From IMG/VR virus record IMGVR_UViG_3300024999_000030, positions 186,001 to 250,000 of that record: a DNA stretch of 64,000 nt, one strand, 5' to 3'. Of this stretch, positions 29,386-62,232 are shown piece after piece (the stretch's first letter is position 1; every line of letters begins with the position of its first letter). Position numbers and translations under genes: made by a program. The notes under the pieces were generated by a model, which saw only the letters and a program-made list of their open reading frames with translations, was not told the DNA's origin and made no database searches.

Positions 29386-29412
29386 TCTAACTTAACTTAT
29401 ATCGGAGATAAC

Positions 29413-29589
29413 ATGGCCAACAAACGGTGGGAAGAATACGGTCACGTGGTTGAAGAAGTTAGAAGTGAGTGGCATAAGGTGATTTATGTAGATGGTGTTC
29501 AGGTTAATGAGACTTTCAGTGAGGCTATTGGAAGAATTATGGCCGAGGAAAGTTTAAAGAAATTAATGAATCCAAATCCTAAACAGTAA
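29413..29589 (+). CDS. 58-aa hypothetical protein between two structured RNAs (not in ORF track)
   Basis: GGAG SD, ATG 29413, MANKRWEEYG...NPNPKQ stop. Confidence 0.55.
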   Translation: MANKRWEEYGHVVEEVRSEWHKVIYVDGVQVNETFSEAIGRIMAEESLKKLMNPNPKQ

Positions 29590-29592
29590 CAC

Positions 29593-29828
29593 CACATTAA
29601 CGCGGGAAGTAGGCTTAAGGGCAGCCATCTTTTAAAGAGTGAGGGCTGGCCATGTGCAGATAATATCGTCTTCGTTCGCAGGGTAGCATAAGAAGACCGA
29701 AGGATAGATTTTTAAAAATTCACAATCTATCTGGGGACGGCCATGGGCACCACTTGCAGCAAACAGAGGATTGTCAAGGACAATCTGTACTGTTCCTCTC
29801 TGGCGTAAAAGCACACCTCGTTAATGTG
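29593..29828 (+). ncRNA. 23S rRNA L11-binding (GTPase-associated centre, H43/H44) mimic with 162-nt insert
   Basis: GGAAGTAGGCTTAAGGGCAGCCATCTTTTAAAGAGT(G)...GCGTAAAAGCACAC versus remembered E. coli 23S ~1055-1104 GGAUGUUGGCUUAGAAGCAGCCAUCAUUUAAAGAAAGCGUAAUAGCUCAC; closed by perfect CACATTAACG/CGTTAATGTG. Confidence 0.8.
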
Positions 29829-30072
29829 TTTTAAATATTTGATAATGGGAGAGATAAAATGCCCACAAATAAAGTAGAAGTATTAATGGGGTCTTATGAA
29901 TCACCTAGGCCAGTAAAATGTTGTATTTGCCATTGCCCCATGTATTACATAGGGGATATTAGATATGAAGCAGAGATAAAAATGGAATTAACAAGTCATG
30001 AAATACCTTCAGTTGATCATGAAATTTTTTATGCTCATGCCAGATGTTTAATGCCATTGATCGGAGGTTGAA

Positions 30073-35546: not shown

Positions 35547-37079
35547 ATGGAACGTAAAGTAAAAACTGGTCCAAAAATTATTGGTCTCGCTTTACTTGTT
35601 ATTGGCCTTATCTTCGGTGGAAAGTGGGTGTTGAACAACACTAATATTATTCCGAAGGGATCTAGTGGTACAAGCAAATCTTTCTTTAAACACGCTAAGG
35701 AACCTCTTAAGGTTTGTGTGGTTACCTGGGGAGGTTATGCTGGTGGTCAGTATTATAATCGTGGTTTCAAACCGAATGACGACTCTCAGTATCTGAAGAA
35801 GTATGATCTTCCTGTAGAGTTTGTTGTTATCGACGATTATAACGCATCCAGAGAGGCGTGGAAGGCCGATGCAGTCCAGGTGCTGTGGACTACTGCTGAC
35901 TCGTTTCCGACCGAAGCTGGGGCACTACAGCGCGCCGGATACAAACCTAAAATCATTTTTCAGTCTGACTGGTCCCGTGGTGGAGATGTCATTGTTAGTA
36001 CCCGAGTTATTAACTCCATTCAGGATCTCAAGGGTAAGCGAGTTAGTGTTGCTTTCGGCACCCCATCCCACACCTTCCTGCTGCGTTCGTTAGAGGCGGT
36101 AGGTATGACGGTTAAAGACCTCAAACTTATTGAGGTTCCGTCTGCTGTTGATTCTGCCACGGCCTTTAAGGCTGGACAGGTTGAGGCGGCGGTGGTGTGG
36201 TCCCCTGACGATGAAGACTGCATTAGTAAGGTTTCAGGAGCTAAGGCTCTCGCTTCCACTAAACAAGCTACCCATATCATCGCCGATGTTTTCTATGCTA
36301 AGGAAGAAATTATTGAGAAGCGTAGAGACGACATCAAGGCTTTGGTAGAAGGTTGGATGATTGGTGCGGCGGAAGTTAACTCTAGCCCCACTGCCCGCTC
36401 TCAGGCTGTTAAGATTCTGGCCGAGGGTTTGAATCAACCTGATGGTTTCATTGATCAGGCAATTAACAATGTTCGCTTAAACACCTACGGAGACAATGTG
36501 AACTTCTTTAATCTTCGTGGAAGTTTTACTGGTGTAACTGGCGAACAGCTTTATCTTGAGACCGGTAGATTGTATCAGGAAAATACCAACCTGGTTCCAG
36601 ATGGTATGCCTTCCTGGAGAGTTATTAGCGATGCCAGTATTCTTCGTGATATCAATCTCACTGGCGTTAATGATGGTGCTGAATCTGACTTTAAGTTCTC
36701 TCAGCCCACCAAGTCTCTTGAAACCGCTCCAGCTCTTAGCACTAAGCGTTTATCTGTGAGCTTCGCCACGGGCTCAGCCTCTCTCGATGCCAACGCTAAG
36801 ACGATTATTGACCTTGGGTTTGTTCCCACGGCTAAGTCGTTTGCTAGTGCCCGCATCAGAATCGAAGGTAACACAGATAGTACGGGTAGTGCCTCGACCA
36901 ACGAGCGTCTTTCCTATCTTCGCGCTAAAGCTGTTGCTGGATATCTTTCCGAGCAGTATGGATTTGACAGCAATCGTTTCGTCATCGTTGGTAATGGTCC
37001 CAATAAACCAATAGCTGACAATGACACCGAAGAGGGCCGTTCTGCTAATCGTCGCACCGATTTTGAGTTGGTGCGGTAA
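35547..37079 (+). CDS. ABC substrate-binding (SsuA/NMT1-THI5-like) - OmpA C-terminal fusion
   Basis: N-terminal TM anchor; DLKGKRV..AFGTPSH..L; C-terminal FATGSASL..IEGNTDSTG..NERLSYLRAKAV..NRRTDF OmpA motifs. Confidence 0.88.
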   Translation: MERKVKTGPKIIGLALLVIGLIFGGKWVLNNTNIIPKGSSGTSKSFFKHAKEPLKVCVVTWGGYAGGQYYNRGFKPNDDSQYLKKYDLPVEFVVIDDYNASREAWKADAVQVLWTTADSFPTEAGALQRAGYKPKIIFQSDWSRGGDVIVSTRVINSIQDLKGKRVSVAFGTPSHTFLLRSLEAVGMTVKDLKLIEVPSAVDSATAFKAGQVEAAVVWSPDDEDCISKVSGAKALASTKQATHIIADVFYAKEEIIEKRRDDIKALVEGWMIGAAEVNSSPTARSQAVKILAEGLNQPDGFIDQAINNVRLNTYGDNVNFFNLRGSFTGVTGEQLYLETGRLYQENTNLVPDGMPSWRVISDASILRDINLTGVNDGAESDFKFSQPTKSLETAPALSTKRLSVSFATGSASLDANAKTIIDLGFVPTAKSFASARIRIEGNTDSTGSASTNERLSYLRAKAVAGYLSEQYGFDSNRFVIVGNGPNKPIADNDTEEGRSANRRTDFELVR

Positions 37080-37129
37080 ACTAAATTTTATAATGGGGGC
37101 CCATATTGGGCCCCCTCTATGGAGGTCAT

Positions 37130-37759
37130 ATGAAAAAGTTTCTGATTACTATGGCGTTGTCGATTTTCTGTGTTACAAACTGGGCCACTTTTACTGGGCT
37201 CACACTTATTCCTACTAGTGATTACATTGGTAAGGATGTGTGGTCTATTGGTGGGCAGGCCTGCTATACTAAGTTCCACACCGATCAGTTTCTTATTACT
37301 GAGTTTGGTTTGGGAGATAGATGTGAAGTGGGGTTTGACTTCTACGCCAATCCACAACAAGTTGAGCATCGTGAATATTTTAACTTTAAATACATGGTGC
37401 TTAAAAGCGACAGCCATAAGTTTTTTGTCAGCGTTGGGTTTTACAACATGATGGTTACTGGAAATTCCGTTCCGTTTCTTGTGGCCACTAAGGACTTGGG
37501 TTTGATTAGAGTCCACGGTGGGGTTCAATATGAAGGACTAACGGACACTAAAAGTAATTGTATGATTGGCATTGATCGTATATTTACTAATGGTTGACAA
37601 GTGTCTGCCGATTATACACATGGTCAACAGAACTTTTCTTCAATCGGCGTTGGTCGTATTGGTAAGCGTTGGCAAACTTTTGCTGGTGCCATGTATCCTA
37701 ATGCTGGCGGGCGGCCCCTTGTTATGTTGAGGATAATTTTTACTGGCAAGGGGAAGTAA
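37130..37759 (+). pseudogene. Signal-peptide protein, beta-strand rich (possible outer-membrane barrel), with in-frame TGA at 37595
   Basis: The frame continues past TGA as NG*QVSADYTHGQQNFSSIGV...LRIIFTGKGK to TAA 37759. Confidence 0.55.
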
Positions 37760-37983
37760 ATGTTTGAAATTTTAATCAGGGGTTTTAAAACTAAAGCACA
37801 AGCAGAGGCATTTTATAGCTGGTATGAAGGACAAGGAGAACAAGACGCTTGTATATGGTTTGAGTGTAGAAAAGAAGAAGGCGACATAGATGTTGATTCT
37901 ATGTTGACTGATGTCAATGTTGGGAATAAGTGGGTAGGAGATTGTTTGACCTTTGAAGTAACCCCTAATTAAACGGAGATCGC

Positions 37984-38781
37984 ATGGATAGTTTGTTTAC
38001 TTTGCGTGGAACACTGTCCAATAGAAATAAACTCATCGTAGAAATTCTTGGAGCAATGTTACTACTTGTTATTTGGTGGACGGTAGTTAGTACTGGACTT
38101 GTTCGTTCCAGCATTCTTCCTTCCCCAGTAAGCGTTATTACTTCCGTGCCAGAGTTGCATTATCAAGACGCTCTTATTATGAATTGTTTGTATTCCCTAA
38201 AACTTAATATTATGGGATACATCGAAGCAATTCTCATTGCTATTCCCCTTGGGTTTTTTATTGGTCTCATTCCAGTATGTAGGGGAATGACAGAGAGATA
38301 TATTACCGCCTTGAGATACCTTCCACTCACTGCCGTCATTGGCTTATTTATTCTGTGGTTTGGTATCGGCGATGCGATGAAGATTCAATTTTTAACTCTG
38401 GGAATTGTTGTGTATTTATTACCAGTAGTAGTGCAAAGAATCGATGAAGTCCAGCAAGTTTATCTGGACACCATTAAAACTTTAGGAGCTACTAACTGGC
38501 AAACAATTTTTAGGGTTTATATTCCCAGCGTTGTTTCTAGGATATCGGATGATATCCGTGTGCTTGTTGCTATCTCTTGGACTTATATTATCATTGCTGA
38601 AGTAGTGAACAAACAGGACGGTGGCATCGGGGCTCTTATTTTTACAGTAGCGAGACAAAGTAGGGTAGATAAGGTGTTTGCCCTTTTGGCTGTTATTATT
38701 GTAATTGGATTCACTCAAGATAAGTTATTCATGTGGTTAGATAAAATTGCGTTTCCATTTAAATATAAAGGAGGTCGATAA
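37984..38781 (+). CDS. ABC transporter permease (SsuC/TauC-like)
   Basis: About 6 TM helices; EAA-like loop (TIKTLGATNWQTIFRVYIP); IVAE-like IIAE motif. Confidence 0.9.
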   Translation: MDSLFTLRGTLSNRNKLIVEILGAMLLLVIWWTVVSTGLVRSSILPSPVSVITSVPELHYQDALIMNCLYSLKLNIMGYIEAILIAIPLGFFIGLIPVCRGMTERYITALRYLPLTAVIGLFILWFGIGDAMKIQFLTLGIVVYLLPVVVQRIDEVQQVYLDTIKTLGATNWQTIFRVYIPSVVSRISDDIRVLVAISWTYIIIAEVVNKQDGGIGALIFTVARQSRVDKVFALLAVIIVIGFTQDKLFMWLDKIAFPFKYKGGR

Positions 38782-39647
38782 TGGCACGTAGCGTTGGAGA
38801 AGAAATCATCGAGGCCGCCATTAATAATACCTCCGATGGTGTTACTTTTGAGAACACCAAATACCCAGACATAATTGAGTTAAAAGATATCTGCCAGACT
38901 TATGATGGCGGAAAAAATTACACTATTAAGAACTGCAATTTACTTATTGAAAACAAACCGGATCAGGGACAGTTTGTGGTACTACTCGGTATGTCTGGAT
39001 GTGGTAAATCCACATTGTTAAAATATATTGCTGGCCTACAGCAGCCCACATCTGGACAAGTTTTAATTGGTGGAAAACTTCGTTCCGATAAAGATATTGT
39101 CAGTATGGTATTCCAACAATATTCTTCTTTCCCATGGCTCTCTGTGCTTAAAAATGTGATGTTACCCCTAGAGCTTAAGGGCGTATCATCTAAAGAGTGC
39201 AGAGATAAGGCTATGGAAATGTTAAAACTTGTTGGGCTTGTGGAACACAAAGACAAATATGCAATGTATGGACCGTTATCCGGCGGTCAGTTACAGCGCG
39301 TTGCTATTGCCCGTAGTCTTGTTTCCAACCCTAACATCATTTTAATGGACGAGCCCTTTGGTGCTCTTGATGGGGTAACTCGTTATCAAATGCAAGTTCT
39401 TTTATCAAAGATTTGGGAGGCTCTTAAGTCAACCATTATTTTTGTTACTCATGACATTAGAGAGGCTGTATTTTTGGGAGATGATATTTATATTATGGCT
39501 CCTCATGGTGGTAAAATTCTTAAGCATTTCTTTGTAAATTTACCACTACATCGAGATTTAGATATCATGCAGGATCCAATCTTTATTGAGACCGTTCGCC
39601 AGATTGATATAGAAATGAGATCTGCTGCAGAAAAATATTTGAAATAG
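38781..39647 (+). CDS. ABC transporter ATP-binding subunit (SsuB/TauB-like)
   Basis: GMSGCGKST, MVFQ, LSGGQLQR, LMDEPFGALD, VTHD. Confidence 0.95.
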   Translation: MARSVGEEIIEAAINNTSDGVTFENTKYPDIIELKDICQTYDGGKNYTIKNCNLLIENKPDQGQFVVLLGMSGCGKSTLLKYIAGLQQPTSGQVLIGGKLRSDKDIVSMVFQQYSSFPWLSVLKNVMLPLELKGVSSKECRDKAMEMLKLVGLVEHKDKYAMYGPLSGGQLQRVAIARSLVSNPNIILMDEPFGALDGVTRYQMQVLLSKIWEALKSTIIFVTHDIREAVFLGDDIYIMAPHGGKILKHFFVNLPLHRDLDIMQDPIFIETVRQIDIEMRSAAEKYLK

Positions 39648-39782
39648 AGTAACAATGGAATTAAATCATGTATAAGCCTTACATACCAGAGCGTGACAAA
39701 AACATCAAGCTTTATAATGATGGGCATTCCTGTCATTTGAAACCATTACCTCTCGACATGGAGGAGAAAGAGAAGGAACGAA

Positions 39783-40601
39783 ATGTTCTTCACCGACTAT
39801 GGACAAATATTAGAAAGCTCATTTCCCTGCGGAGAGAAAAATGTTAATGATTTTAAAGTCATGGGACATTCACTTTTGGCAGCGAGTAACATCAAATGGA
39901 AGTGGGAATCTGATTCAGAACTAATCACGCTCATGTTGATAAAAAAGCTCTATCCAAATATTTTAACTCTTACAATTTTTTACCTCCCATATGGAAGAGC
40001 TGACAGGAACGAAAAAGGTGGAAGTTCGTGCTCGCTAAGATATGTCGGAGATTTTATTCAATCACTTGGATTCGAGAAAATTACAGTTCTCGATCCCCAT
40101 TCCGATTTATCGATTGCATACCTTGGCGAATCTGCGTGCTCATATTATCCAAAATCTGAACTGCTTACAGGGCTTGGCGTTAACTACACGCCAAAAAATT
40201 CAGTAGTAATGTTTCCTGATTCTGGAGCACAAAAGCGTTATGGCAAAGCCTGGTATGGATATCTGCATGTCTTAGGTTCAAAGACCAGGGATTTTCGAGA
40301 CGGTAAGCTCACTGGTTATTCTATCGCGGATGGGGTTCCAGCAGAAGGCAAGCATGTTATTATAGTTGACGACATTTGTTCGTATGGTGGTACATTTATA
40401 CTTGCCTCAAACGCTATCAGAAAATTCAATCCGTTGTCAGTGGCACTTGTTGTAACTCACTGTGAAGACAGCATTTTCAATGGTGATGTTTTAAAGGCTG
40501 GTAGCCCAATCGATCTTGTCGTCACAACAAATTCCCTAATTACTAAAGAGGGATCTTCTAAACTTAAAATCGTAGATGTTATAAAAACAGGAGGGAACTA
40601 A
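39783..40601 (+). CDS. Ribose-phosphate pyrophosphokinase-like protein (putative Adps of NARP1)
   Basis: FPCGE, YLPYGRADR, DPHS, FPDSGAQKRY, IVDDICSYGGTF; adjacent to the NAMPT-like gene. Confidence 0.85.
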   Translation: MFFTDYGQILESSFPCGEKNVNDFKVMGHSLLAASNIKWKWESDSELITLMLIKKLYPNILTLTIFYLPYGRADRNEKGGSSCSLRYVGDFIQSLGFEKITVLDPHSDLSIAYLGESACSYYPKSELLTGLGVNYTPKNSVVMFPDSGAQKRYGKAWYGYLHVLGSKTRDFRDGKLTGYSIADGVPAEGKHVIIVDDICSYGGTFILASNAIRKFNPLSVALVVTHCEDSIFNGDVLKAGSPIDLVVTTNSLITKEGSSKLKIVDVIKTGGN

Positions 40602-54330: not shown

Positions 54331-55638
54331 GTGATGATTCCCTGGTCCACGAGCACGAACTTGGCAACAGCTAAAAATCCAAACCGTCCGGTGAACGGGG
54401 TACTATCGGAAGATTTATTTGCTTGTAATCCTAATCCAAGTTTTAGTCTTTCGTCAAGTGTTATTCAGGAAGCTAAAAGAAAAAAACAAGACTACTCCCA
54501 TATATTAGAAAGAAATTTAAGTGGTAAAATATTTCCGTTTAAAGATATAGCAACTAGATATTGCCCCGAGCTTTTTGACGCCTTATCTATGTTAGTTGTT
54601 TTTGCTAGACATCCTGGTAAGCTCTGGGTGGCCGGTGGATCACTACTTGCTAATAAACTTGGAAAACCTATTAAGGATGTAGATTTTTTCTTTTCCGATA
54701 GAAATACAAGATTAGAGGTATTAGATTATTTATTGTGGAAAGGATATGTTATCGATTTTGTAAGTTCAAATGCCACCACAATGAGTAAAAATGGACAGCC
54801 TCCGATTCAACTTATCAATAATCACTATTATAATGACATGTTAGATTGTTTGATGGGGTTTGATATTTGTGCTAGCCAATTTGGCTTAAGAGTTATGAAC
54901 GGATCTCTTAACGAAATCCGTCCTAATAATACTTTATTTGATATGGATACAAAAAGATTTATGTTAAATGATATGGCAGTTGGAGATCCAAGAGTTACAA
55001 TTAGAAGATTAATTAAATATGCAAAACAATATAATCTTACTCCCGTATATGATCAAACCACATATCGTGTGTTTGGTGCAGCAGCAGAAGCGGGAGCTAG
55101 AGACTATGATAGTCTTAACAACAAAGAATATAAAAAAGAAGATTACACTTTTCCTAGAGATTTATCTTCTCTTTGGACAGCACCAACGGTAGACATTGTT
55201 AAAGGCAATTTACGTGATGTATTGGGCGATATGACCGATTGTTATGGAAGTTCTTATGATTTATGGTTGGGCTTTAAAAAAAGCATTGATAGGCGCCTTG
55301 GGGGCGAATGGAGTCTAGAGCATTGTGCAAAGATTGCTATAGATTTAACTAATCAATGTAATACTTTTCCATTTATTCGATCACATATGGACTATGGAAA
55401 CTGGCCTAGCTTTCAAGACTTTGCTAATATGGCGCCTGCTATTGACCATTATCTTAAAAAAGGATTCTTAAGCAATTGGCAAGATTTTGGAAATGCTTTA
55501 TATGTTTCCGATGAACAAGATCTAGGAATTTCTTTGAATGTTGTCATGCAACTGTCTGTGTTTTTAGAAACAAAATTGCCGGGGATGCGAGATAATCCGT
55601 GGCCTGGAAAAACAGAAGGAGATAACGGTGATTACTAA
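54331..55638 (+). CDS. CCA-adding/poly(A)-polymerase-like nucleotidyltransferase head domain protein
   Basis: WVAGGS...KDVDFFF, FDICASQFG, RRLIKY. Confidence 0.7.
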   Translation: MMIPWSTSTNLATAKNPNRPVNGVLSEDLFACNPNPSFSLSSSVIQEAKRKKQDYSHILERNLSGKIFPFKDIATRYCPELFDALSMLVVFARHPGKLWVAGGSLLANKLGKPIKDVDFFFSDRNTRLEVLDYLLWKGYVIDFVSSNATTMSKNGQPPIQLINNHYYNDMLDCLMGFDICASQFGLRVMNGSLNEIRPNNTLFDMDTKRFMLNDMAVGDPRVTIRRLIKYAKQYNLTPVYDQTTYRVFGAAAEAGARDYDSLNNKEYKKEDYTFPRDLSSLWTAPTVDIVKGNLRDVLGDMTDCYGSSYDLWLGFKKSIDRRLGGEWSLEHCAKIAIDLTNQCNTFPFIRSHMDYGNWPSFQDFANMAPAIDHYLKKGFLSNWQDFGNALYVSDEQDLGISLNVVMQLSVFLETKLPGMRDNPWPGKTEGDNGDY

Positions 55639-57013: not shown

Positions 57014-58318
57014 ATGGCGAATACTAATAAGGCTAGAACTAGATATATTATCGTCCTTCCCAGAAACTCTGGCTCTACGCAATATGTCGCAATGAACGCT
57101 ATCGTAGGCACTATTTTCTCTAGTGGTAGTAACGATGGAGTTTATGATTCTCTTCAACTTATGTTCCCTGGTGTTTATGATATTTTCCCAGATAAGCGTA
57201 TGTTGGTAGCTGAGGCCGTCATTGAATCATTGTCTTACGCTGCTAATGTTTCCATTAAAAATATTGATTGCCAAGCAACACCAGATGAACGCCCCAGAGT
57301 ATTGCTTCTAACTGTTGCAAGTAGTGAAAAGAGTAAAGATATTTCTCACTTAATTGTTTTGGAGAAGTATCTGCCTGAGAATGATATTCTTGACTTACCC
57401 TCGGCTGATGGCTCTGGTCACCCAGCATCAAGTGCGACGAACATGGCTGGTGGTAAGGTCGCTGGGCCTGGACAGCAAGAACAAAAATCCGCTGGGTATA
57501 TTTATATGCCAAAGCATAATGTTCCCTTGATTCTCGGAGAACATGAAGCTAATGTACTACAGGATGTCCTTGATGCTATTGTTAACCGTAAGAAGATTTT
57601 TGAAGATTATGGTCTCGATGAGGTTATGGACACCAATAGTATGTGTTTTCTATTTCATGGTGCTCCTGGGACAGGCAAAACACAAGCCGCCAAATATGTT
57701 GCTAAGAAACTCAACACGCCTCTTCTTATCGTTGACCACAGTCAAATTGTAGATAAATATGTGGGAGAGACTGAAAAGCGTATTGCTGAAGTGTTTAAAC
57801 GCGCCGAAACCGAAAAGTGCATCATCTTCTTTGATGAAGCTGACTCTTTGCTTGGAGCGAGGAATGGAGCGGAGCACTCTTGGGAAATCAGCAAAGTTAA
57901 TGCGTTGCTTCAGTCTATGGAAAATTTTAATGGCGTAGCAATTTTTGCAACGAACTATGCTTCTCAGCTTGATCAGGCTGTTAATAGACGACTTCTTATG
58001 AAGATTACTTTTGATCTTCCTGATCAGGAGAGCCGTGCTAAAATTTGGGAGGCTTTGCTGCCCACCAAGGCCCCTAAAGATGCGCTCGATTTTAAGGAAT
58101 TAAGCAAACATCTTATGACTGGCGGCGAAATTAAGAATGCAGTTATCTCTGCAACAGTTGAAGTTGCTAAGACTGATGCAAAGATTAACATGGACTCTCT
58201 TAATCGAATGGCGGCTAAAGTTATTGAGGAGCGCCTCTTTGATCCATATAAGGAATCGGATAAGGAGAAATCCAAGAAGAATATGGGGTTCGGACCCCCG
58301 ATGATGGAATTGAAATAA
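57014..58318 (+). CDS. AAA+ ATPase with unknown N-terminal domain
   Basis: HGAPGTGKT, IFFDEAD, ATN, DQAVNRRL, TGGEIKNAV. Confidence 0.92.
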   Translation: MANTNKARTRYIIVLPRNSGSTQYVAMNAIVGTIFSSGSNDGVYDSLQLMFPGVYDIFPDKRMLVAEAVIESLSYAANVSIKNIDCQATPDERPRVLLLTVASSEKSKDISHLIVLEKYLPENDILDLPSADGSGHPASSATNMAGGKVAGPGQQEQKSAGYIYMPKHNVPLILGEHEANVLQDVLDAIVNRKKIFEDYGLDEVMDTNSMCFLFHGAPGTGKTQAAKYVAKKLNTPLLIVDHSQIVDKYVGETEKRIAEVFKRAETEKCIIFFDEADSLLGARNGAEHSWEISKVNALLQSMENFNGVAIFATNYASQLDQAVNRRLLMKITFDLPDQESRAKIWEALLPTKAPKDALDFKELSKHLMTGGEIKNAVISATVEVAKTDAKINMDSLNRMAAKVIEERLFDPYKESDKEKSKKNMGFGPPMMELK

Positions 58319-61011: not shown

Positions 61012-62232
61012 ATGGCAGATTTTCTAGCTGGCAAGAGCGATTCAGAAATTGCGAAGATTAAGATTGCAGCTGCAAAACGTGAGGCGCATTCTAAATGTCC
61101 GTTCTTCGCCTTTCTTTTGTTTGCTCCCAACTATAAGGAAGCTCCAGATGAAATGTGGACTTCTGCTGGTGGGTCTCCAACGATGGCGACTGACGGAGAA
61201 AACATTTTCTATTCCGTTCAGTTCATTAAGGACATTCCGATTGATCAGTTAATCGGAGTTTTAGTCCACGAGGTTATGCATTGCGCTTTACTTCACATTG
61301 TTCGTAAGGGTGTGCGTGACCCACTCAAATGGAACATTGCTATTGACTATGCAACCAACGCTATTCTTCATAAGAACAATCTCAAGCTTCCCGCTGGCAC
61401 TTTGTTTGATGCAAAGTATAACGATAGAAGCGCTGAAGAGATTTATGTTGATGTCTCTAAGAACCCACCTGACATGAAAAAGGTTAAGATGTTTGATATG
61501 CATATGTTTGGCGAGGGGGATGGTGGCAACAATAAGAAAAATAATGGCGGAGGTCAGAACTCCAGTGAAAAATTTAAAGAGCAAATGTGGAAATCACATC
61601 TTGCTAACGCTGCTGTTCAGGCCCGCCAGCAGGGTAAGTTGCCCGCTGGGATGGAGCGTATTATTGAGGATGTTCTGGAAGATAAGGTTCCGTGGCAGCA
61701 AATGCTTTCCAGATATCTGAGCCCGTTTGCACTGAAGACTGATTTCACCTGGACTAAGCCCAATAAGAAGATGCTTCAGTTTGGTATTATTCTCCCTGGG
61801 TTCCAGTCTGAAAGCCTTGAAGTTGCTGTTGGTGTAGATACTTCCGGTTCCATTGGACCCAACGAGATTCAAACTTTCCTTAGTGAAGTTCAAGGCATCA
61901 TGAGTGTGTCTAAGAACTATACGATTCACATCGTTGGTTGTGATGCTCAAGTTGATGAGAAGGATTATCATATCATCACTGAGTGTAACTCCACTCTTCC
62001 CACAAAGCTCGGTGGTGGTGGTGGCACGGACTTTCGGCCCGTGTTTGATTTCTATGAGAAGAAGAATGTGCGCCCGGCCTGTTTAGTTTACTTTACTGAC
62101 GGCTATGGGACCTTCCCGAAGGAGCCTCCCGACTACGATGTTATCTGGTGCGTGGTTCCTGGTGGGGTTGGCCCCGACCAGGTTCCTTGGGGTGTTTACG
62201 TCCGGACTGAATTCGACAAGGACGAAGAGTAA
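61012..62232 (+). CDS. HExxH metallopeptidase + VWA domain protein (DUF2201-like)
   Basis: TMATDG, HEVMH, WNIAxDYxxN, VDTSGS (MIDAS), GGGGTDFRP, YFTDG. Confidence 0.9.
   Translation: MADFLAGKSDSEIAKIKIAAAKREAHSKCPFFAFLLFAPNYKEAPDEMWTSAGGSPTMATDGENIFYSVQFIKDIPIDQLIGVLVHEVMHCALLHIVRKGVRDPLKWNIAIDYATNAILHKNNLKLPAGTLFDAKYNDRSAEEIYVDVSKNPPDMKKVKMFDMHMFGEGDGGNNKKNNGGGQNSSEKFKEQMWKSHLANAAVQARQQGKLPAGMERIIEDVLEDKVPWQQMLSRYLSPFALKTDFTWTKPNKKMLQFGIILPGFQSESLEVAVGVDTSGSIGPNEIQTFLSEVQGIMSVSKNYTIHIVGCDAQVDEKDYHIITECNSTLPTKLGGGGGTDFRPVFDFYEKKNVRPACLVYFTDGYGTFPKEPPDYDVIWCVVPGGVGPDQVPWGVYVRTEFDKDEE

Follow-up and report, generated by a model that had tools for sequence, protein, structure and literature searches.

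The 64,000-nucleotide stretch of DNA analysed here (hereafter the window, positions 186,001 to 250,000 of the IMG/VR virus record IMGVR_UViG_3300024999_000030) carries, at 29593-29828 on the + strand, a free-standing copy of nucleotides 1055-1105 of 23S rRNA, that is, of helices H43 and H44 of the GTPase-associated centre (GAC). The element is a member of a large and apparently undescribed RNA family of large tailed phages, whose RNAs, as judged from sequence comparison, are probably decoys for some ribosomal protein or factor. In the ribosome, the GAC is the docking site for uL11, EF-G, EF-Tu, IF2 and RF3, and it contacts RelA-bound tRNA. Among the translation components that phages are known to encode are tRNAs, tmRNAs, ribosomal proteins and translation factors; to our knowledge, an rRNA functional centre has not previously been described in them as a free-standing replica.

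A copy of the L11-binding domain in the window

That the window holds an isolated copy of the GAC had been noticed by a sequence-only reading of the stretch, and the observation is confirmed. As described there, two segments that align to 23S rRNA reproduce H43/H44 inside a perfect closing stem of 10 bp (Table 1). The first corresponds to the upper part of H42, to H43 and its A1067 loop, to the junction and to the 5' side of H44, while the second provides the H44 hairpin, in which A1095 is a loop nucleotide, and the 3' sides of H44 and H42. Identity to the genuine 23S copy L088 amounts to 40 of 51 nucleotides, and the compensatory changes named in that reading, A1058-U1080 and U1090-A1101, are real, as are the loop adenines that it found to be kept (A1067 at 29617 and A1095 at 29807). 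The H43 loop is unusual in another respect: next to the retained A1067 it has A, G and G at positions 1068, 1069 and 1070, which among the listed elements of the family is otherwise shared only by L051 and L323.

A 29-nt core pattern of the domain occurs once in the window, whereas 100 shuffles gave 0 matches, also when three mismatches were tolerated. When the whole element is folded, its MFE structure contains the closing stem, H43 and the H44 hairpin (z = -2.66), and the model CM R1, made from a 35-member alignment from which the window was left out, matches the element with 82.2 bits (E=1e-20), its sole significant match in the 64 kb. A second, weak match of the same model at 54990-55085 (13.2 bits, E=0.07), restricted to the region of the insert and H44, is AT-rich and probably noise. 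The element sits in a 270-nt gap with small ORFs at 29413-29589 and 29859-30071 on either side. An Rfam search of the window matched neither LSU nor SSU rRNA and gave no family at the gathering score, nor any at E<=10 for 29400-30000; ARAGORN, in turn, gave no tRNA or tmRNA gene in the window and nothing tRNA-like at the element. Thus, with no rRNA gene in the window and at least 182 distinct elements of the same design (see below), the claim that this is a mimic of the L11-binding domain and not a scrap of rRNA has held.

Table 1. Features of the window: parts of the element, with their basis, and an apparent uptake system with the gene that follows it
Feature	Position	Strand	Basis
Closing stem, 5' arm (H42-like helix)	29593..29602	+	Perfect complement of 29819-29828; throughout the family the corresponding stem covaries, in every pair type
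Mimic 5' segment, 23S 1055-1090	29605..29640	+	Alignment to the 23S copy L088; CM R1 (82.2 bits); family conservation and covariation
Variable domain, 158 nt, between U1090 and G1091	29641..29798	+	Closed by GAGG 29641-29644 and CCUC 29795-29798
Linker UCUG, 4 nt, from insert stem to G1091	29799..29802	+	Linker counts in the family; CM alignment
Mimic 3' segment, 23S 1091-1105	29803..29817	+	CM alignment; 23S alignment
Closing stem, 3' arm	29819..29828	+	Complement of 29593-29602, 10 bp, perfect
Substrate-binding domain fused to an OmpA-like domain	35547-37079	+	
Permease of the apparent ABC uptake system	37984-38781		
ATPase of the apparent ABC uptake system	38781-39647		
Phosphoribosyltransferase-domain protein, after the ABC genes	39783-40601		

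The window itself is phage-like, with all long ORFs on the + strand. In the region 35547-40601 the huge phage encodes an apparent ABC uptake system and, after it, a phosphoribosyltransferase-domain protein; the first ORF of the region has its best relatives in uncultured phages of 540-735 kb and in Lak phages. An AAA ATPase and a DUF2201 VWA-like/metallopeptidase-like protein are encoded close together at 57014-58318 and 61012-62232 (+).

The family and its genomic setting

A scan of IMG/VR with the H43 core only returned 106 loci. Two are real 23S genes and one is an insert-less copy (L076); all others bear an insert, the sequence running from ...AAAGAGU through an unrelated stretch to UUU(G/A) and GCGUAAnAGCACAC. 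A second scan, anchored on the 3' junction alone, which is absent from true 23S rRNA, gave at least 110 elements in IMG/VR and on MAG contigs. Together, the two scans yield at least 182 distinct elements from viral contigs, MAG contigs and large phages that have been cultured, a family size that is a lower bound because exact patterns were used. Either scan fixes one half of the element, and the opposite half then gives an unbiased view. Of the first 80 contigs listed from the H43-core scan, 35 have a length of at least 100 kb. When 596 Gb of genomes were scanned with the 3'-junction pattern, the matches were mostly due to chance, the 5' half being present in 43 of 114, mainly on MAG contigs; isolate bacterial chromosomes appear to be without the element in that scan.

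With the conserved core as a short blastn query, the element was also found in finished genomes of cultured phages, almost always in unannotated gaps. The cultured carriers include Cronobacter phage GAP32, Pectobacterium phage CBB, Serratia phage BF, Erwinia pEa_SNUABM phages and Yersinia phage fHe-Yen9-04; the Xanthomonas phages XacN1, XbC2 and XaC1; the Pseudomonas phages pf16, Milchi, Astolliot and UNO-G1W1; and Aeromonas phage 4_4572, Ralstonia phage RSP15, Acinetobacter phage ME3, Vibrio phage 2.275.O and Paenibacillus phage Pd_22F. Relatives come only from such short core queries, as a blastn search with 1.4 kb around the window element gave no match in cultured phages. Copies identical to the window element are L024, L070 and L322 (contig Ga0209212_1000024, 332,731 bp). 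Some GenBank 'phage' records of 2-7 kb, among them OR845016, OR850018, OR847528 and KM209255, align with 23S rRNA without a break and seem to be pieces of host rRNA deposited as phage sequence.

A tRNA gene lies within 300 nt of 106 of the 182 listed elements (58%), in all 106 cases on the same strand, and in pf16 the element fills the gap from tRNA-Asn to tRNA-Pro. Since so many members adjoin a tRNA gene and always share its strand, the element looks like a stable non-coding RNA gene that would be expressed together with the translation-related RNAs of the phage. In the window and in GAP32-type phages it lies among small early-type genes, and in the window it is not beside tRNAs. No recurrent protein-coding neighbour emerged, the largest neighbour cluster accounting for 8 of the 182 listed loci; the window neighbours of the element are ORFans in Pfam and PHROGs, and no ribosomal protein gene was found near the element, the neighbours being tRNAs or ORFans. 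A search of the flanks of the window element gave no convincing promoter or terminator, and a T-rich tail after the closing stem, considered as a terminator, was present in 35 of 181 members versus 16 in the upstream control and is therefore not a family feature.

The only insert-less free-standing copy among the listed elements (L076:1590-1660) lies between two tRNA genes on a 190-kb viral contig; it reads ...AAAGAAC GCGUAAUAGCGCAC..., and C1090-G1101 replaces U-A.

As to known RNAs, the expectation that the element would not belong to a described Rfam family was borne out, with no Rfam match for the element in the window or in related loci: in 13 related loci, whose inserts span 104-364 nt, nothing but tRNAs and an unrelated HEARO RNA reached the gathering score, and neither in the window nor in those 13 loci did the GOLLD, ROOL and HEARO models match the element. 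A HEARO RNA (133 bits) was located at L046:11348-11572, separate from the GAC mimic within the same viral locus. The mRNA leaders by which ribosomal proteins regulate their own synthesis (the L10 leader, the L1 site on the L11-operon mRNA) are likewise imitations of an rRNA site that bind a ribosomal protein outside the ribosome; however, they are cis-acting cellular 5' UTRs with partial resemblance to rRNA, whereas the phage mimic is a near-complete, stand-alone replica, and the Rfam models of such leaders had no match in the window. Closer in position are the T4 species 1 and 2 RNAs (rnaC and rnaD), small stable RNAs inside the phage tRNA cluster and on its strand, as is the tRNA-adjoining part of the family. 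Only their genomic position is analogous, as T4 70908-71171 contains no GAC-like motif. The RNA-seq-defined ncRNA001 of PA5oct, a related jumbo phage with four reported ncRNAs, is not a mimic either, so that rnaC/rnaD and ncRNA001 were rejected as known or expressed homologues.

A keyword search of the literature retrieved no description of such an RNA; the 2023 survey of structured RNAs in IMG/VR states that no rRNA predictions overlap its candidates (PMC10690425), and the unnamed candidates of that survey may include it. The mimic is absent from Rfam 15 and unannotated in GenBank records.

Conserved fold and variable domain

Selection on the fold, which the sequence-only reading had argued from the changes in the window, is supported by the family as a whole. 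RNAalifold, applied to 35 diverse members, returns the closing stem, H43, the closing stem of the insert and the H44 hairpin, with compensatory changes at 17 of 21 pairs. In particular, pair 1058-1080 is found in all four Watson-Crick types among the 182 listed elements (UA 71, GC 57, AU 36, CG 11), and the same set gives AU 164 and CG 14 at 1057-1081, UA 109, CG 47 and AU 14 at 1082-1086, CG 175 and AU 5 at 1064-1074, and GC 150 and AU 29 at 1055-1104. The H43 pairs 1057-1081, 1058-1080, 1059-1079, 1062-1076, 1063-1075 and 1064-1074 are each paired in at least 96% of the 182 listed elements, and double changes occur in H43 at 1058-1080, 1057-1081, 1064-1074 and 1062-1076. The closing helix, 8-12 bp long, shows every pair type at each of about eight positions, and the H42-like stem of the family has no conserved sequence. 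In H44, pairs 1087-1102, 1090-1101, 1091-1100, 1092-1099 and G1093-A1098 are present in 178-182 of the 182 listed elements; they hardly vary, so that their support is conservation and not covariation.

Conservation is strongest at nucleotides of the tertiary fold. U1060-A1088 is kept in 179 of the 182 listed elements, among which G1091-C1100, C1092-G1099 and G1093-A1098 are near-invariant, while G1071 and C1072 are kept in 108 and 110, respectively, of the 110 members listed from the 3'-anchored set. We take U1060-A1088, G1071, C1072, 1082-1086, G1091-C1100 and C1092-G1099 to be the positions that build the tertiary fold in crystal structures of L11-RNA complexes. The loops are less constrained: A1067 is replaced by G in 26 of the 110 members listed from the 3'-anchored set (24%), and A1095 is kept in 68 of 74, with 1096-1097 variable. 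In bacterial 23S rRNA, A1067 hardly ever varies; it touches the tRNA elbow, and sensitivity to thiostrepton depends on it. The mimic thus has the secondary structure and the conserved tertiary-fold nucleotides of the 23S L11-binding domain (nucleotides 1051-1108, H42-H44). Unlike that domain, it lies outside an rRNA gene, has a covarying closing helix of its own and A1101 in place of U, carries a variable domain and a UUUR linker at 1090/1091, and is under relaxed constraint at A1067 and 1095-1097.

A1101, the insert and the UUUR linker are derived characters that are common to the family and absent from the true 23S copies compared, which speaks for a single origin and later spread from phage to phage, rather than for repeated capture of host rRNA. 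The same data bear on whether the element could be a captured, functionless rRNA fragment or an assembly chimera. High similarity to 23S rRNA would fit such an origin, and some short 'phage' records in databases are host rRNA contamination; however, rRNA flanks are missing and the flanks differ in every member, the same sequence as in the window is carried by contigs independent of each other (112 kb and 333 kb), the element is present in finished genomes of cultured phages, and the covariation and the derived characters extend across the family. The comparative data reject this origin, whose probability is practically nil; like the intron model discussed below, it is essentially excluded.

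The 162-nt structured insert of the sequence-only reading has been kept in part. The three hairpins named there stand (29668-29673/29692-29697, 29703-29715/29719-29731 and 29769-29775/29779-29785), but the insert is better read as a domain of 158 nt followed by a linker of 4 nt than as a single unit. Taken alone, the window insert has no unusual stability (MFE z = -1.32). Apart from identical copies it has no relatives among the listed elements. In the window copy, AGAGGA at 29765-29770 can also pair with UCCUCU at 29794-29799, in competition with the family-type GAGG/CCUC stem, which makes alternative junction folds possible there.

Across the family, an insert is present in about 99% of members and always at the U1090/G1091 site. 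Its first and last nucleotides pair in register right after U1090 in 172 of the 182 listed elements; pairing is canonical at stem positions 1, 2 and 3 in 181, 179 and 169 of 182, respectively, with GC, AU, UA and CG types, and the stem extends over 3-5 bp. The linker before G1091 is UUUG in 145 of the 182 listed elements and UUUA in 31, UCUG occurring once, in the window. Between these constant parts the insert is hypervariable, with lengths of 23-365 nt (median 136) and 103 sequence clusters among the 182 listed elements, the window insert being a singleton. No meaningful rRNA-derived pieces were found when all inserts were compared by blastn-short with a full rRNA operon (that of L088). On the 3' strand, C1100 and A1101 adjoin without a break, and since nothing separates them the two halves of H44 would be able to stay coaxial, with the native fold preserved. 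The insert thus looks like a built-in part of the fold that forms, as third arm, a three-way junction; it is a constant feature of the family and does not look like an intron.

Indeed, a proposal that the insert is excised to activate the mimic does not survive its presence at one site in nearly all members, with a conserved stem and a UUUR linker. Under such a model the gene would be interrupted, and removal of the insert, as an intron that splices itself or is cut out in another way, or through a switch, would activate the mimic; the U before the insert and the G at its end in the window, as well as the one insert-less copy, would agree with this. The U is indeed kept in 181 of the 182 listed elements, but U1090 is the native base in most bacterial 23S rRNAs, and in 31 of the 182 (17%) an A, not a G, precedes G1091. 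Inserts can be as short as 23 nt, their 103 clusters have no common core, and the window region matches no group I, group II or ribozyme model even at E<=10. The conserved stem and linker look like a structural junction, and nothing points to a role as a switch. Group I introns in rRNA genes also interrupt conserved rRNA-like sequence after a U, but the phage insert has no catalytic core, no Rfam match and no homing endonuclease and is as small as 23 nt; the reading as a group I intron or ribozyme was therefore rejected on size range, 3'-junction nucleotide and missing core. As a whole, the intron or switch explanation is extremely improbable.

Some insert classes contain recognizable modules. 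In the largest cluster, 39 of 44 inserts end in a stem, ACC, a 3-bp stem with a tetraloop, UAAG and a stem; this ACC/UAAG module usually follows an AGU(A/G) motif, its flanking stems covary, and its internal loop resembles what we take to be a motif of the tetraloop-receptor type. Its carriers include pf16 (L108), Aeromonas phage 4_4572 (L109), L004, L031 and L053, and it is absent from the window insert. A hairpin with the core of the sarcin-ricin loop, AGUAC-GNRA-GGA, is present in four inserts of 309-359 nt (L022, L051, L276 and L323), where its flanking stems covary. The motif has four matches, three of them clear, versus 0.5 expected from shuffles, and the window insert is without it. In these elements a single RNA therefore carries copies of the two halves of the site at which factors bind the ribosome.

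Such modules raise the question of whether the insert is the working part, a lineage-specific cargo RNA for which the GAC module serves as a protein-recruiting, nuclease-resistant scaffold. The near-constant presence of an insert, the number of insert clusters and the conserved, covarying modules in some insert classes (ACC/UAAG, sarcin-ricin-like hairpins) are in line with cargo. However, bare hairpins of 23-40 nt also occur as inserts and would amount to an 'empty scaffold', the GAC part is much more conserved than any insert, and for the window insert, which is without relatives, no complementarity or protein-binding role was found. We regard a scaffold with cargo as quite unlikely.

Candidate partners and biological meaning

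The partner of the RNA is best approached through the pattern of conservation. Since the fold nucleotides are near-invariant while A1067 and 1095-1097 are relaxed, the comparison argues somewhat for a partner that reads the fold, such as uL11, rather than the loop bases, as EF-G and thiostrepton do. The loop bases contact EF-G, the tRNA elbow and thiostrepton, and thiopeptides bind H43/H44 (PMC5829649). Moreover, the H42-like stem is without conserved sequence, so the module corresponds to a minimal L11 site and not to a uL10 site. The C-terminal domain of uL11 binds exactly this rRNA fragment, and loss of uL11 causes a relaxed (relC) phenotype and altered efficiency of RF1 and RF2.

A stable phage RNA that acts in trans as a mimic and captures a fold-recognising protein, with uL11 as the best candidate, is the reading that we tentatively prefer. 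The RNA would be transcribed with its neighbouring genes, which in most phages are tRNA arrays, and processed to a stable species; it would then capture in trans a protein that reads the folded GAC domain. By keeping uL11 off ribosomes, it would phenocopy relC/rplK mutants, with a blunted RelA-dependent stringent response and altered behaviour of release factors and GTPase factors during infection. Either a relaxed phenotype or an altered RF1/RF2 efficiency could favour the phage. With roughly one uL11 for each ribosome, its titration would need a very abundant RNA, and exchange of ribosome-bound uL11 may be slow, which would also count against titration. Simple capture of uL11, in addition, leaves the near-universal insert unexplained, and the conservation would fit any fold-specific binder.

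The loop positions also weigh on two other possible partners. The RNA might be a decoy for an agent that attacks the GAC, such as a toxin of the host or of a competitor, a defence effector or a thiopeptide, and would spare the ribosomes that the phage needs: the free mimic would absorb the attack, as phage tRNAs replace or evade cleaved host tRNAs. Placement in tRNA arrays on the same strand fits this logic of 'spare translation parts', and the H44 loop is mostly native-like. The GAC is, moreover, a proven target, given that the T6SS toxin Tre23 ADP-ribosylates 23S rRNA around 1095-1098 in H44 (PMC8661411) and that thiopeptides bind H43/H44. The replacement of A1067 in about a quarter of members and the variability of 1095-1097 make the proposal weak for base-reading agents, and a catalytic toxin is poorly answered by a stoichiometric decoy. 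It also counts against such a decoy that we know of no anti-phage system that targets the GAC, and we consider it unlikely.

The RNA could instead trap translational GTPases (EF-G, IF2, RF3, LepA, BipA) or RelA-tRNA, or be a platform for them, by offering a ribosome-free copy of their docking site. The sarcin-ricin-loop-like hairpin added in the four long inserts described above speaks for such a trap. The isolated GAC fragment also binds L11 and thiostrepton. There is an in-vitro precedent: Munishkin and Wool 1997 reportedly found EF-G binding by 'ribosome-in-pieces' oligoribonucleotides of the thiostrepton and sarcin-ricin domains. Such synthetic RNAs are laboratory constructs, whereas the phage family consists of natural genes with an added variable domain. 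The sarcin-ricin-like hairpins occur in just 3-4 of the 182 listed inserts and not in the window, and the bases that contact factors or the tRNA elbow are the least conserved (A1067 and 1096-1097). Affinities of translation factors for isolated rRNA fragments are weak, which counts further against this role. A GTPase trap is thus a distinctly improbable explanation.

Capture of uL11 has a wider form, which is possible though doubtful: phages across many host phyla may encode a uL11 sponge that silences RelA-dependent (p)ppGpp signalling and retunes the use of release factors and GTPase factors. If true, the sponge would be the first viral decoy of an rRNA domain, and in some lineages the RNA with the sarcin-ricin replica would be a ribosome-free copy of the whole factor-binding site.

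The family is widespread, strongly conserved and present in cultured, tractable phages, namely pf16 on Pseudomonas putida as well as GAP32, CBB, XacN1, Serratia phage BF and Aeromonas phage 4_4572, and it is invisible to current annotation. Because it shows a compact rRNA fold serving, in nature, as a module that accepts grafts at a programmable site, the element is also of interest for RNA engineering. Since the GAC is the docking site of factors and a target of thiopeptides and at least one toxin, a viral decoy of it, if true, would open a direct experimental route to the control of the stringent response and of translation by phages, to whether defences attack the GAC, and to the exchangeability of uL11 in vivo.
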